A stretch of 63,053 bases of DNA, filler included, from Pelomyxa schiedti (lineage: Eukaryota; Protista; Evosea): NCBI GenBank assembly GCA_020536535.1. It is 16 parts of 16 records of this genome, joined end to end, with 100 filler letters (N's around TTAATTAATTAA, not from the genome) between each part and the next. Parts side by side here need not be neighbours in the genome. Positions count along the whole stretch, not along the records: positions 51,351 to 56,631 come from JAHLWZ010000395.1; 15 more parts are not named here. One strand, given 5' to 3'. Below the pieces are notes generated by a model, which had not been told where the DNA came from, did not search any database, and saw only the letters and a program-made list of their open reading frames with translations. The first letter of the stretch is position 1, and each line of letters begins with the position of its first letter. A program made the translations under genes and the position numbers. Below are positions 51,251 through 56,631 of this stretch, in pieces.

Positions 51251-51502
51251 NNNNNNNNNNNNNNNNNNNNNNNNNNNNNNNNNNNNNNNNNNNNTTAATT
51301 AATTAANNNNNNNNNNNNNNNNNNNNNNNNNNNNNNNNNNNNNNNNNNNNAGTGGTTTATTATCCGTGGTAGGTTTCGCCCCCTCTCCCCCCTTCTCTTC
51401 TTCCTTTACTTTAGTGACTTTAGCATCTACTCCTCCAGCGGCTAGTACAGTAGTGTCCTCCCCCTCCCCCTTTCGAATCCGTTGTAAAAATTGCCTCTTT
51501 AG

Positions 51503-52090
51503 CAGAACTTTCAAAGTGGGCTGCAACAAAAACTGACCAATTGCAACGTGTATGGGCGGAAAGCATTTGCGAACAGGCTTTGTTCCAGGCCGTCGATCAA
51601 CTAAAGGCGGCAAGTACCCCACAAGCAAAAAAATACCCTTTGCTTATTTCTTGACCAGTTTCTGGATAAAAAATACAACTTGGGTGGAAAGCACTCCATG
51701 ATGAACCCCGGTTCACTTGAGGATTGGCCCCTTACACAACAGAAGGAGCTGTTTGAGGTTTATTATTTTAATTTCCATGTTATCAAAATAATAGTATTCT
51801 TCACCAACACAGCCCTTTTCCAGGCACTCGGCCACTTACCCGGTGAAATCGGTGTAACACTATTACCAAGCTACTTCATGGTTCCAGCCAAAACAGTATC
51901 CGGTTTGCTGATTCCATCACCACCGGGTGATACCACCAGCCAGTTTGTGAACTGCCAACTCTGCCCGCGACCAGTATGCCCCGGCCGGCGTGGTGTGTAT
52001 CCACTTTCACTAGCCCACAAACTTACTGCACTCTACCTCTCCCCTACAGCTCCCTACGATCCTGTTAAATGGAAGGAATACAACCTTTAG
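51503..52090 (+). CDS. B12-dependent methionine synthase activation (AdoMet-binding) domain, stand-alone bacterial type; 5'-truncated; introns 51610-51658 (GC-AG), 51758-51823, 51993-52049
   Basis: Spliced product: ELSKWAATKTDQLQRVWAESICEQAL...KYNLGGKHSMMNPGSLEDWPLTQQKELFEALG...EIGVTLLPSYFMVPAKTVSG...FVNCQLCPRPVCPGRRAPYD. Confidence 0.85.
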
Positions 52091-52282
52091 AATGAATAAC
52101 GTTTCCGTGTCCAAAATGTGGGTGCATGTTCAGAAGCACACCCACTGTCCGCGGATATAGCCTATTCCTTACCCACGCACCATTAATACCCCCTGTTATC
52201 TGTATCCTACCATTCTATTCCATTTCTTGTTGAGTATTACTATCATTTTTTCCTTCTTTCGTTTCGTTTTCCAACAAGAGAA

Positions 52283-53644
52283 ATGTCCCGCAGCAGCGAA
52301 ACGACGTCCCCGCCGGGGGATTATGACGACGCCGACGACTGCGCCGGCGCCTGTGGTGGGAGCAGCGACGACCTCTACGACGAGGATGACGACGACGAGG
52401 ACGAGGACGAGGAGGAGGACTCTCCCGAGGGCGGAGGTGGCAGCAGCACGAGCACGAGCAGGAGCAGGAGGAGGAAGCGCGGGCCCGAGGCTGCGACCAG
52501 CCGCGCCGCCGCATCCGACTGGATGGCGCTGCGGGCCGAGGCCGACGCCGCCCTCCGCGCCGCAACCGCTGCCACGGGGGCCCCCGACTCGGACGGCGGG
52601 GGCTACGGCGACACCGCGGACGACGACGGCGACGACGGCTACTACGAGAACCCCGCCACCGCCGCCGAGGACTGCTGCCCCACGAGGAGGGACGACGACG
52701 AGGTGGCCGCAACCAGGGGAAGGGAGGCCAGCAAGGAGGGGGACGTGGATGTAGCAGGGGACGGGGACGGGGACGGGGAGGAAGGAGGGGGGCCGGCGGC
52801 GGGTCTGGGGCTGCAGCAGCTGCAATCGCGGGACTATGCGAAGAGGAGGAGGGTGTCCAGTGACGCTGGGGGGAAGGCGTTGCCGGCAGCAAAGCGGGAG
52901 GCCCAGGGGGAGGGGGAGGACACTACTGTACTAGCCGCTGGAGGAGTAGATGCTAAAGTCACTAAAGTAAAGGAAGAAGAGAAGGGGGGAGAGGGGGCGA
53001 AACCTACCACGGATAATAAACCACTGCCGGCACTGCAAACTCCCCCTCCTTCACAGCTGCATTCTGATACCACTATTGCGGAAAGCGGTGATCCGCCGGT
53101 TGTGCAGTCGATTTTACCTAAAGAGGAACCGAAAGACTGCGCCACCGGAATTCCTACAACAACAATAAATCCCGCAATACTAAAAGCAGAACCGCATAAC
53201 TGTGATATGGATGTTGACAATAATACCCGAACCACAGCAACAACTTGTACATCGTCCTCTGCATCCACAACAACAATTACCAGTGTACCCTTTCCAAACT
53301 CCACTGCGGTAAAAATGGAACCTCAGATGATATCTGAGAACGACGCCTTGCATGATGCCCTAGAGAAAGCCCTCCATGCAGGCACGCCAGTCCACCATAA
53401 GTTCCGGCCCTATTCCTGTGAGAACTGCAAATGGTGCCTTCAATTTAAGCACTCCACTACTACCGAAGATTGCAAAACCTGCGGATGTGCCCTGGTTTAC
53501 CACATACAACCAGCAAACAGTGACGATGATGGAGATGATGAAGATGACGGCGATGGTACCGAGGACGATGACGATTCATATGACTACACTGCCTTTTCTG
53601 ATAGTGACAAGGCCAGTGGTGCTTCCTCCGCCGACGAATCATAA
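52283..53644 (+). CDS. 453-aa acidic, disordered protein with a C-terminal Cys/His cluster (copy A)
   Basis: Single ORF with D/E tracts, an RRRKR NLS-like motif and CENCKWCLQF-x7-CKTCGCALVYH. Confidence 0.65.
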   Translation: MSRSSETTSPPGDYDDADDCAGACGGSSDDLYDEDDDDEDEDEEEDSPEGGGGSSTSTSRSRRRKRGPEAATSRAAASDWMALRAEADAALRAATAATGAPDSDGGGYGDTADDDGDDGYYENPATAAEDCCPTRRDDDEVAATRGREASKEGDVDVAGDGDGDGEEGGGPAAGLGLQQLQSRDYAKRRRVSSDAGGKALPAAKREAQGEGEDTTVLAAGGVDAKVTKVKEEEKGGEGAKPTTDNKPLPALQTPPPSQLHSDTTIAESGDPPVVQSILPKEEPKDCATGIPTTTINPAILKAEPHNCDMDVDNNTRTTATTCTSSSASTTTITSVPFPNSTAVKMEPQMISENDALHDALEKALHAGTPVHHKFRPYSCENCKWCLQFKHSTTTEDCKTCGCALVYHIQPANSDDDGDDEDDGDGTEDDDDSYDYTAFSDSDKASGASSADES

Positions 53645-53961
53645 AACGGCCCTATACTATTTGTATTTCAAAAGAACCTCCCTAATGGCACACCCCATTG
53701 AAGTTGTAAACACCAATGAGAAGGAAATTATTTTGTTCGTATCTAGAAGTTTTTACGCTAATCATCAGAGTCAAACAAACCTTAATTCGGGTGAATCACT
53801 CACATCATCGTAACCAACTGAAATATCACTTCGACTGAACGATCTGCGTGATGACCGAAAACTCCTACAACAAATCTATTCACCAAACTCCTCCTGTTTC
53901 ACCCCAAACAACCCTTTTTATCCACCACTTTAACAACGTAGCAAATTTCATACCAACCAAA

Positions 53962-54211
53962 ATGGCAGAACAACACCCGCTAGTGCCAGTTGTATCATGC
54001 ATTAATGCTAAGGACCAGCTGTTTGCCTTTGCATGCTGCTGCCTTATACCCCGCTGTAATGGTTGTGGTAATGTCAAACTGACACAGTGCATAGTTAGGC
54101 ACATAGGGGAAGAGTGGGTGGTGGCCACTGACAGGGTGGTCACAGTGAGGGTGATGGGGAGGGTGGTGTGTGGTGATGCTATGAGGACTGTGTGGTTCGA
54201 GGTGTCACACA
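53962..54211 (+). CDS. 5' part of a KDQ..AF.....PRC family member (copy A), cut by a gap
   Basis: MAEQHP...AKDQLFAFACCCLIPRCNGCG...VWFEVSH. Confidence 0.5.
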
Positions 54212-54311
54212 NNNNNNNNNNNNNNNNNNNNNNNNNNNNNNNNNNNNNNNNNNNNNNNNNNNNNNNNNNNNNNNNNNNNNNNNNNNNNNNNNNNNNNNNN
54301 NNNNNNNNNNN

Positions 54312-54517
54312 CAGCCAAAACAGTATCCGGTTTGCTGATTCCATCACCACCGGGTGATACCACCAGCCAGTTTGTGAACTGCCAACTCTGCCCGCGACCA
54401 GTATGCCCCGGCCGGCGTGGTGTGTATCCACTGTCACTAGCCCACAAACTTACTGCACTCTACCTCTCCCCTACAGCTCCCTACGATCCTGCGAAATGGA
54501 AGGAATACAACCTTTAG
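54312..54517 (+). CDS. 3' end of a second copy of the methionine synthase activation domain gene
   Basis: PAKTVSGLLIP...CQLCPRPVCPGRR|APYDPAKWKEYNL*, with the same intron as copy A. Confidence 0.8.
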
Positions 54518-54710
54518 AATGAATAACGTTTCCGTGTCCAAAATGTGGGGTGTATGTTCAGAAGCACACACCCACTGTCCGCGGATATAGCCTATCCCTT
54601 AACCACGCACCATTAATACCCTGTTATCTGTATCCTACCATTCTATTCCATTTCTTGTTGAGTATTACCATCATTTTTTCCTTCTTTCGTTTCGTTTTCC
54701 AACAAGAGAA

Positions 54711-56069
54711 ATGTCCCGCAGCAGCGAAACGACGTCCCCGCCGGGGGATTATGACGACGCCGACGACTACGCCGGCGCCTGTGGTGGGAGCAGCGACGAC
54801 CTCTACGACGAGGATGACGACGACGAGGACGAGGACGAGGACTCTCCCGAGGGCGGAGGTGGCAGCAGCAGCACGAGCAGGAGCAGGAGGAGGAAGCGCG
54901 GGCCCGAGGCTGCGACCAGCCGCGCCGCCGCATCCGACTGGATGGCGCTGCGGGCCGAGGCCGACGCCGCCCTCCGCGCAGCAACCGCGGCCACGGGGGC
55001 CCCCGACTCGGACGGCGGGGGCTACGGCGACACCGCGGACGACGACGACGACGGCTACTACGAGAACCCCGCCACCGCCGCCGAGGACTGCTGCCCCACG
55101 AGGAGGGACGGCGACGAGGTGGCCACAACCAGGGGAAGGGAGGCCAGCAAGGAGGGGGACGTGGATGTAGCAGGGGACGGGGAGGGGGACGGGGAGGAAG
55201 GAGGGGGGCCGGCGGCGGGTCTGGGGCTGCTGCAGCTGCAATCGCGGGACTATGCGAAGAGGAGGAGAGTGTCCAGTGACGCTGGGGGGAAGGCGTTGCC
55301 GGCAGCAAAGCGGGAGGCCCAGGGGGAGGGGGAGGACACTACTGTACTAGCCGCTGGAGGAGTAGATGCTAAAGTCACTAAAGTAAAGGAAGAAGAGAAG
55401 GGGGGAGAGGGGGCGAAACCTACCACGGATAATAAACCACTGCCGGCACTGCAAACTCCCCCTCCTTCACAGCTGCATTCTGATACCACTATTGCGGAAA
55501 GCGGTGATCCCCCGGTTGTGCAGCCGATTTTACCTAAAGAGGAACCGAAAGACTGCGCCACCGGAATTCCTACAACCACAATTATAAATCCCGCAATACT
55601 AAAAGCAGAACCGCATAACTGTGACATGGATGTTGACAATAATACCCGAACCACAACAACAACCTGTACATCATCCTCCGCCTCCACTGCAACAACAAAT
55701 ACCAGTGTACCCTTTCAAAACTCCACTGCGGTAAAAATGGAACCTCAGATGATATCTGAGAACGACGCCTTACATGACGCCCTAGAGAAAGCTCTCCATT
55801 CAGCTACACCATCCCACCATAAGTTCCGGCCCTATTCCTGCGAGAACTGCAAATGGTGCCTTCAATTTAAGCACTCCACTACTACTGAAGATTGCAAAAC
55901 CTGTGGATGTGCCCTGGTTTACCACATACAACCAGCAAACAGTGACGATGACAGTGATGGAGATGATGAAGATGACGGTGATGGTCCCGAGGACGATGAC
56001 GATTCATATGACTACACTGCCTTTTCTGATAGTGATAAGGCCAGTGGTGCTTCCTCCGAGGAATCATAA
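54711..56069 (+). CDS. 452-aa acidic protein with a Cys/His cluster (copy B)
   Basis: Closely similar to 52283-53644 with small in-frame indels. Confidence 0.65.
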   Translation: MSRSSETTSPPGDYDDADDYAGACGGSSDDLYDEDDDDEDEDEDSPEGGGGSSSTSRSRRRKRGPEAATSRAAASDWMALRAEADAALRAATAATGAPDSDGGGYGDTADDDDDGYYENPATAAEDCCPTRRDGDEVATTRGREASKEGDVDVAGDGEGDGEEGGGPAAGLGLLQLQSRDYAKRRRVSSDAGGKALPAAKREAQGEGEDTTVLAAGGVDAKVTKVKEEEKGGEGAKPTTDNKPLPALQTPPPSQLHSDTTIAESGDPPVVQPILPKEEPKDCATGIPTTTIINPAILKAEPHNCDMDVDNNTRTTTTTCTSSSASTATTNTSVPFQNSTAVKMEPQMISENDALHDALEKALHSATPSHHKFRPYSCENCKWCLQFKHSTTTEDCKTCGCALVYHIQPANSDDDSDGDDEDDGDGPEDDDDSYDYTAFSDSDKASGASSEES

Positions 56070-56381
56070 AACTGCCCTATACTATTTGTATTTCAAAAGA
56101 ACCTCCCTAACGGCACACCCCATTGCAGTTGTAAACACCAATGAGAAGGAAATGCTTTTGTTCGTATCTAGAAGTTTTTACGCTAATCATCAGTCAAACA
56201 AACCTTAATTCGGGTGATTCACCCTCATCACCGTAACCAACTGAAATATCACTTCCACTGAACGATCTGCCTGATGACCTAAAACTCCTACAACAAATCA
56301 ATTCACCAAACTCCTCCTGTTTCACACCAAAGCCTTTTAATCCACCACTTTAACAACGTAGCAAATTTCATACCAACCAAA

Positions 56382-56631
56382 ATGGCAGAACAACACCCGC
56401 TAGTGCCAGTTGTATCATGCATTAATGCTAAGGACCAGCTGTTTGCCTTTGCATGCTGTTGCCTTGTACCCCGCTGCAATGGTTGTGGTAATGTCAAACT
56501 GACACAGTGTATAGTTAGGCACATAGGGGAAGAGTGGGTGGTGGCCACTGACAGGGTGGTCACAGTGAGGGTGATGGGGAGGGTGGTGTGTGGTGATGCT
56601 ATGAGGACTGTGTGGTTCGAGGTGTCACACA
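56382..56631 (+). CDS. 5' part of a KDQ..AF.....PRC family member (copy B)
   Basis: Near-identical to 53962-54211. Confidence 0.5.

Follow-up and report, generated by a model that had tools for sequence, protein, structure and literature searches.

The activation domain of the cobalamin-dependent methionine synthase MetH (Pfam Met_synt_B12, PF02965; structures 1MSK and 3BUL from Escherichia coli and 2O2K from human) forms part of an enzyme of 1227 amino acids (aa), and the E. coli domain contacts S-adenosylmethionine (AdoMet) through Asp946, Glu1101, Tyr1130, Arg1134, Tyr1139 and Tyr1189/1190 (PMC1282579). Split MetH systems with a separate reactivation protein, of the canonical domain type, are also known in bacteria (PMC5764234; PMC7311316). 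In Thermotoga maritima, the stand-alone protein TM0269 (1J6R) is encoded directly downstream of its MetH, TM0268. In anaerobes, the RamA or RACE proteins (DUF4445) bring corrinoid proteins from Co(II) back to Co(I) via iron-sulfur (Fe-S) centres (PMC5764234). The anaerobic amoeba Pelomyxa schiedti is itself reported to have a cytosolic B12-dependent MetH, annotated as Pelo_918, and MetH is present in all Archamoebae studied but Entamoeba. Here we describe a spliced gene at positions 51503-52090 (+ strand) of a 63,053-nucleotide (nt) stretch of P. schiedti DNA (assembly GCA_020536535.1), which we call the window and in which 16 parts of the genome are joined end to end. It is near certain that this locus is a real, transferred and expressed gene of a prokaryotic family of stand-alone proteins.

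The gene lies at positions 51351-56631, which are a single 5281-nt scaffold (JAHLWZ010000395.1). Its exons 51503-51609, 51659-51757, 51824-51992 and 52050-52090 on the + strand splice to one frame of 137 residues, read from 51505, and the peptides quoted by the original prediction for this locus were all found there in frame. The spliced product was compared, by script, only with a family profile of 228 positions that was built in this analysis from 163 full-length prokaryotic homologues of about 230 aa. It matched this profile over one uninterrupted stretch (positions 96-224 of 228) with 171 bits and an E-value of 1e-54, a score that chance would not explain, and it is about 50% identical to many family members. 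All ten invariant residues of the family, namely G146, S147, Q156, F160, P182, S187, C200, C203, C208 and R211, are present in the Pelomyxa product.

When the unspliced open reading frame (ORF) of 136 aa was searched exhaustively with HMMER against 1.84 billion representatives, 373 matches were returned. The best 150 of these are stand-alone proteins of prokaryotic type, nearly all of 220-240 aa, with the match at the C-terminal end; the shorter entries among them are probably fragments, and one is a 423-aa fusion (P0199). Full-length MetH of 1200 aa, the eukaryotic form of which would as best match have refuted the original prediction, does not occur among the best 150 of the 373, nor does any eukaryotic entry besides the public protein Pelo_4857, which is discussed below.

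Evidence from sequencing runs was taken from Logan contigs, for which presence and junctions count and nothing else. Exon A (51503-51609, +) opens with two bases of a split codon, encodes (S)ELSKWAATKTDQLQRVWAESICEQALFQAVDQLKA and matches profile positions 95-131 with 24.6 bits. It is followed by intron 1 (51610-51658, +), which is 49 nt long, of GC..AG type with the donor GCAAGT, and in phase 0. In the single-cell RNA run X4, one contig joins 51503-51608/9 directly to 51658/9-51722, with the GC-AG intron gone, and once the ambiguity of 1 nt is resolved the 49-nt skip falls exactly on 51610-51658. Among the introns of P. schiedti, 1.59% have GC-AG boundaries (PMC8887013). The GT at 51614, considered as the donor of this intron, would give an intron of 45 nt and lose the frame, whereas the GC at 51610 keeps the frame and matches the RNA junction. 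Hence the claim that three introns can be removed in frame stands as to the single 137-aa frame, with its first donor moved from GT 51614 to GC 51610.

Exon B (51659-51757, +) encodes FLDKKYNLGGKHSMMNPGSLEDWPLTQQKELFE and also matches the family profile. According to column counts and an alignment by hhalign with E. coli MetH, it carries at 51701-51715 (+) the near-invariant family motif M-N-P-G-S in place of the R-x-x-x-G-Y of MetH. Intron 2 (51758-51823, +; 66 nt, GT..AG, phase 0) is A+T-rich and holds no in-frame stop, so the unspliced ORF reads through it. Once it is removed, the product matches the family profile gap-free, and this homology together with the GT..AG ends supports the intron, no RNA contig spanning 51758-51823. 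Exon C (51824-51992, +) encodes ALGHLPGEIGVTLLPSYFMVPAKTVSGLLIPSPPGDTTSQFVNCQLCPRPVCPGRR plus one base and matches the family profile with 72.6 bits. Near its end, at 51953-51991 (+), lies a C-X2-C-X4-C-x2-R-R motif (CQLCPRPVCPGRR), a candidate metal or Fe-S site and the hallmark of the subfamily. Intron 3 (51993-52049, +; 57 nt, GT..AG, phase 1) is skipped exactly by a contig of run X5 (from another study, library kind unrecorded), which joins 51992 to 52050. Its removal gives ..CPGRR/APYD.., the same as in the homologues. Exon D (52050-52090, +) encodes (A)PYDPVKWKEYNL and is closed by the stop TAG at 52088-52090.

The gene does not begin at exon A. The same X4 contig carries 43 letters ahead of 51503 that are not in the scaffold and end in ...TGTGGAT; read on into exon A, these letters give the peptide IFAFVATCG-S-ELSKWA. 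At this junction the family consensus reads RVFPYVATCGRELEEW / RVFPYVATCGRELEEWA, and the residues ..FVATCG correspond to profile positions 86-94, the family's own N-terminal half. In the DNA contigs of runs X1 and X2, ...TGTGGAT is followed by GTATGG and then by the sequence from 51464 onward. Comparison of these letters with the join in X4 therefore shows a fourth intron, of 45 nt, and a gene that extends upstream. The 3' 39 nt of this GT..AG intron occupy 51464-51502 (+); the scaffold lacks the exon before it and the intron's opening 6 nt (GTATGG). A contig of run X1 holds 763 nt upstream of 51464. From the family's N-terminal half (about residues 1-95, ending in ..VATCG), the last nine residues, IFAFVATCG, are seen at the loose ends of RNA and DNA contigs. 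A profile search with that half matched no Pelomyxa protein, and an exact look-up of a 130-aa ORF in public assemblies gave no match. The 5' part of the gene thus exists, and its lack from the scaffold is a problem of the assembly and not a feature of the gene. The missing 5' exons pointed out by the original prediction have been recovered as far as these nine residues.

A scaffold that lacks the 5' end might also suggest that the exons encode the C-terminal part of something longer and multidomain, be it a full-length MetH or a fusion protein, and fusions of the domain do occur in bacteria (P0199 of 423 aa; fusions with CobW). However, the upstream exon continues the N-terminal half of the family at positions 86-94 with no B12-binding domain, and there is one long protein, of 423 aa, among the best 150 of the 373 matches. 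We consider such a multidomain gene very improbable.

The same contigs bear on the question of contamination. P. schiedti carries prokaryotic endosymbionts and its assembly comes from amplified single cells, so that bacterial or endosymbiont DNA might have been misbinned as amoeba DNA. Against this stand four introns of spliceosomal type, three of whose junctions were found in spliced contigs, a low-complexity gene of non-bacterial character on the same contig, and an identity to any prokaryote of only about 50%. Contamination is excluded because the spliced junctions are seen, and this explanation is effectively refuted.

The family itself is widespread among prokaryotes. A search for related loci, made with a 12-sequence alignment, found it in at least 579 species-level genomes of bacteria and archaea, and its carriers include Dehalococcoidia, Anaerolineae, Clostridia (Desulfosporosinus, Desulfitobacterium and Formimonas), Desulfobacterales, Armatimonadota, Aerophobetes and Bathyarchaeia. 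Its members are usually annotated as 'vitamin B12 dependent-methionine synthase activation domain-containing protein'. No second eukaryotic member was found in the databases searched; outside Pelomyxa the protein is known from anaerobic bacteria and archaea, all named relatives are bacterial or archaeal, and the cluster names of relatives, where present, are bacterial. In a maximum-likelihood tree, the amoeba sequence stands amid Anaerolineae and metagenomic rows. Because the relatives are prokaryotic stand-alone proteins and the introns are confirmed by contigs, the parsimonious view is that the gene was transferred and its introns came later. The gene most likely came from an anaerobic prokaryote and acquired four or more short introns afterwards, in agreement with the horizontal acquisition originally proposed. 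Lateral gene transfer into anaerobic amoebae is common, so the transfer as such is unsurprising.

Other arrangements of the domain were also observed in prokaryotes. The N-terminal half of the family alone makes up proteins of about 137 aa in Dehalococcoidales (P0281, P0285, P0286, P0290 and P0300), the whole domain is also fused within 423-aa proteins annotated as MarR (P0199), and a structure search of the Atlas returned structurally similar Bacteroidota proteins of about 532 aa with CobW (metallochaperone GTPase) and Met_synt_B12 domains.

The relation of the family to the MetH activation domain is visible at several levels. With Pfam Met_synt_B12, the unspliced ORF scored 15.0 bits and exon C alone, the sole stretch of the gene that this model detects, scored 15.8 bits, both under the gathering score of 25; full-length prokaryotic members reach 25.4-35 bits against this cut-off, via one block of 40 residues. 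Pfam and NCBIfam searches with single exons gave weak matches or none, and a phmmer search of the Protein Data Bank (PDB) with the unspliced ORF returned nothing relevant. The family profile matches TM0269 over about 155 residues with an E-value of 8e-8, and the E. coli and human activation domains more weakly. A model of the homologue P0037 by AlphaFold (AF2) has a pLDDT, the predictor's own score, of 94, and its top 19 Foldseek matches in the PDB are all MetH activation domains, 1J6R being the first (E-value 3.9e-9, TM-scores 0.65 and 0.74). On account of this pLDDT and of these 19 matches, the assignment of the MetH activation-domain alpha/beta fold to the family, as predicted for P0037, is sound.

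At the sequence level, the family shares with the MetH activation domain the block G-x-x-L-T-E-S-x-x-M-x-P-x-x-S-V-S-G-x-x-F. Yet the MetH domain is about 100 residues longer, lies within its large enzyme and has no Cys tail. TM0269 resembles the family more closely, since it too stands alone, measures about 200-230 aa and shares the fold, and both have P-G..(D)..P-L and L/V-x-P-x-K-(S/T) motifs. The two differ in that TM0269 keeps R-I-S-P-G-Y (the R-x-x-x-G-Y of MetH) where the family has x-M-N-P-G-S, and in the C-X2-C-X4-C tail, which the family has and TM0269 is without, its alignment stopping short of the tail. Judged by these residues, the family is a diverged relative of the methionine synthase B12 "repair" module that is not of the TM0269 type. 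The likeness of the locus to short stand-alone prokaryotic proteins with an activation fold and a Cys-rich tail, noticed earlier, is thus borne out by the best 150 of the 373 matches, the fold and the motif. Its comparison with the Thermotoga module holds for the fold, in which TM0269 is the closest, but neither for the AdoMet residues nor for the linkage to MetH.

The cysteine motif of the tail is invariant or nearly so. Across the 163 homologues, C200, C203 and R211 are each found in all 163 and C208 in 162. A further cysteine, Cys92, is present in 124 of the 163 members, and also in Pelomyxa (..VATCG). The family tails match Pfam ScfRs (PF09856) weakly and consistently at profile positions 124-143, with E-values of 0.03-0.08. 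In the ScfR regulator MtPrpR, a C-X2-C-X4-C motif and a remote Cys bind a cubane [4Fe4S] cluster (PMC6765138). As in the family, the three-Cys spacing lies near the C-terminus and the fourth Cys is distant in the chain, although the remainder of the ScfR proteins is unrelated to the family, for which a cluster is predicted only. By this analogy, C-X2-C-X4-C together with Cys92 may form a metal or [4Fe-4S] site, which we treat as a lead and not as a result.

The genomic context of the family was surveyed in 80 prokaryotic loci by calling ORFs, clustering the neighbours and scanning 79 adjacent same-strand genes with Pfam. The commonest neighbours are the housekeeping genes MgsA, UvrC and MutS2, and in none of the 80 loci did a MetH gene turn up. 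In about 8 of the 80 loci, the family gene has at its side or in its vicinity a gene for a pterin-binding methyltransferase, for a small corrinoid protein or for a URO-D-type methyltransferase, and these are parts of three-component corrinoid methyl-transfer systems. In two loci (L004:6083-8717 and L005:1843-4477), a URO-D-type methyltransferase, a B12-binding corrinoid protein and the family gene stand in an operon-like row on one strand. These two rows are the clearest prokaryotic tie of the family to corrinoid methyl transfer.

From the fold, the precedent of the motif and this minority of gene neighbourhoods, we infer that the protein may be a metal- or Fe-S-bearing helper of a corrinoid protein or of MetH, a role that we put forward tentatively and at clearly less than an even chance. 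In such a mechanism, the protein would dock on a corrinoid-binding partner (MetH, another corrinoid methyltransferase or a corrinoid protein) as the MetH activation domain does, and would help to return the inactive Co(II) corrinoid to its active state. Electrons would be relayed by a metal centre, perhaps a [4Fe-4S] cluster, bound to the three invariant Cys residues and Cys92. The likeness to RamA or RACE would lie in this proposed kind of job, by analogy only, since those are ATP-dependent ASKHA proteins that have no sequence or fold kinship with the family. Taken as a whole, the explanation that joins a real, spliced and transferred nuclear gene, of which the 3' two-thirds are seen, with a role as corrinoid helper appears moderately probable to us.

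Several observations weigh against this explanation, some of them touching the chemistry. An alignment of the family profile with the profile of E. coli MetH 897-1227 by hhalign had a reported probability of 93.6%. In this alignment, Arg1134 falls on a variable column, with Arg in 22 of the 163 members and Met in Pelomyxa; Tyr1139 falls on a near-invariant Ser (154 of 163), which is Ser in Pelomyxa too; Tyr1130 lies within a 12-residue segment that is absent from the family; and Glu1101 meets an unconserved column. As these four known AdoMet-contacting residues (PMC1282579) are not conserved, canonical AdoMet binding by the family looks doubtful from the alignment, and the classical chemistry of reductive methylation may therefore not apply. 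The metal site is likewise open to question. Cys92 is missing in 39 of the 163 members, no compensating Cys was found when one was sought in them, and the tail matches to ScfRs are weak, below significance and from related sequences. Neither does the genomic context speak with one voice, for about 90% of the loci have no conserved neighbourhood and no partner is kept. On a 636-kb metagenomic bacterial contig (L003:8001-8702), the family gene was even seen in a purine operon, between SAICAR synthetase and AIRC. Moreover, the tree shows no supported sister of the amoeba sequence, and about 95 N-terminal residues of the Pelomyxa protein are off the scaffold and may hold extra domains. Finally, all members of the family are uncharacterised, and the role is a proposed one.

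The fold and the loss of the AdoMet residues also bear on two other explanations. The first, which corresponds to the view of the original prediction, takes the protein for a separately encoded, AdoMet-dependent subunit that reactivates a split methionine synthase. It would act exactly as TM0269 does with TM0268, or BT0249 with BT0180 in Bacteroides, which presumes a partner MetH without an activation domain of its own. Such systems are documented in bacteria (PMC5764234; PMC7311316), TM0269 is the closest solved structure and has the same fold, and P. schiedti does have a MetH in Pelo_918. But the R-I-S-P-G-Y of TM0269 is x-M-N-P-G-S in the family, the equivalents of Tyr1130 and Glu1101 are lost, and none of the 80 loci places MetH beside the family gene as TM0268 stands next to TM0269. 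We regard this explanation as unlikely, if still a serious one. The split methyltransferase or MetH system that the original prediction saw implied by the gene is not supported as stated; the lost AdoMet residues and the 80 loci without MetH weaken it, and P. schiedti already has an annotated MetH in Pelo_918.

The second explanation keeps the fold and gives up the corrinoid: the protein would be an Fe-S or zinc protein in sensing or in another enzyme, or the amoeba copy would be a drifting relic. The loss of the AdoMet ligands agrees with it, as do the fusions with MarR-annotated and CobW-type proteins and the prokaryotic neighbours, most of which lie outside C1 and corrinoid metabolism, one member standing in a purine operon. 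The block G-x-x-L-T-E-S..M-x-P-x-x-S-V-S-G shared with the MetH domains is nevertheless strongly conserved, and corrinoid protein, pterin methyltransferase and URO-D neighbours recur. As for a relic, no invariant residue is missing from the amoeba gene, which is spliced and occurs in RNA contigs. This explanation strikes us as rather improbable, and the helper of a corrinoid protein or MetH is kept as the preferred, if tentative, role.

The scaffold requires caution in its own right. It consists of two contigs, 51351-54211 and 54312-56631, separated by 100 N, and its assembly by SPAdes in single-cell mode, with k up to 121, started from amplified single cells (PMC8887013). The first 121 nt (51351-51471), outside the gene and without strand, are a 100% reverse complement of 52905-53025, and the length of this inverted repeat equals the assembler's largest k-mer. 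No contig of runs X1 and X2 covers 51351-51446, and left of 51464 the X1 and X2 contigs carry letters other than those of the scaffold. Since the copy is perfect and inverted, has the length of the k-mer and differs from independent contigs, these 121 nt are taken as an assembly artefact. Where it joins the true sequence, the two have about 8 nt (ctccccct) in common, as would be the case in an amplification chimera or a graph artefact.

From 51885 on, contig 1 is nearly repeated by contig 2, with 62 mismatches and 37 gap columns in 2342 aligned columns, and both contigs end at the identical base. The two copies (51885-54211 and 54312-56631) diverge unevenly, by 0-1% in some 200-nt windows and by 5-7% around 53080-53870. 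Each variant has contigs of its own within the same single-cell runs. The two copies may be a tandem duplication or two alleles scaffolded in series, and the data fit either. In contig 2 the gene is represented by a second copy that is cut by the N gap (54312-54517, +), with the end of exon C at 54312-54419, the intron at 54420-54476 and exon D at 54477-54517. The last intron is identical in place, as claimed earlier, and one residue differs, V to A. An unspliced contig with the variants of copy 2 is present in RNA run X4, which might be pre-mRNA or carried-over DNA.

This second copy has given rise to the public protein Pelo_4857 (KAH3763291.1, P0001), which is encoded on the scaffold at window positions 53962-54517. 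In its model, an unrelated Cys-rich ORF (53962-54172) is continued by the final 1.3 exons of copy 2, the two being linked by an 'intron' at 54173-54314 that spans the 100-N gap and whose acceptor is the first 'cag' past the gap, a position that is exonic in copy 1. Pelo_4857 is an artificial fusion across the assembly gap. Copy 1 (51503-52090), the more complete one, surfaced as a modelled protein in no database search that was run. Because Pelo_4857 is artificial and the better copy is unmodelled, surveys based on the proteome would miss the gene.

The remaining ORFs on the scaffold are unrelated to the gene. One is the Cys-rich ORF (MAEQHPLVPVVSCINAKDQLFAFACCCLIPRCNGCGN..), which is found at 53962-54211 and a second time at 56382-56631; both contigs break off inside it at the identical base (..gtcacaca). 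It has neither a family match nor an RNA contig. It was considered as the 5' exon of a next copy of the gene, on a weak collinearity by eye with profile positions 51-92, and was rejected, as the profile gives it no score (-1.6 and 0.3 bits) and the true upstream exon ends in ..IFAFVATCG and not in ..WFEVSH. A contig of run X1 continues for 2648 nt past 54211, so that individual runs read through the break of the public assembly. Downstream of each copy of the gene lies an intron-less ORF of 453 or 452 aa (52283-53644 and 54711-56069) that has no Pfam match. Its N-terminal half is acidic, of low complexity and 70-76% G+C; its C-terminal half, of about 46% G+C, has a Cys/His-rich block (..FRPYSCENCKWCLQFKH..CKTCGCALVYH..) and then an acidic tail. 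The two copies of this ORF differ by 20 synonymous and 14 non-synonymous codon differences and by small indels.

The Pelomyxa gene is, in the databases searched, the sole eukaryotic member of a widespread and uncharacterised prokaryotic family, whose label of "methionine synthase activation domain" probably overstates the case, as the AdoMet-binding residues are lost and an invariant Cys motif is present. A bolder proposal, which we consider a long shot, is that the family may constitute a distinct AdoMet-independent class of corrinoid reactivation proteins with a [4Fe-4S] cluster of its own on C-X2-C-X4-C and Cys92, and that Pelomyxa would be the first known eukaryote to have adopted it. If so, the anaerobic amoeba could re-reduce the cobalamin of methionine synthase from ferredoxin-type donors, which would replace the methionine synthase reductase route of aerobic eukaryotes. 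The gene thus bears on how an anaerobic eukaryote keeps its cobalamin enzymes active.

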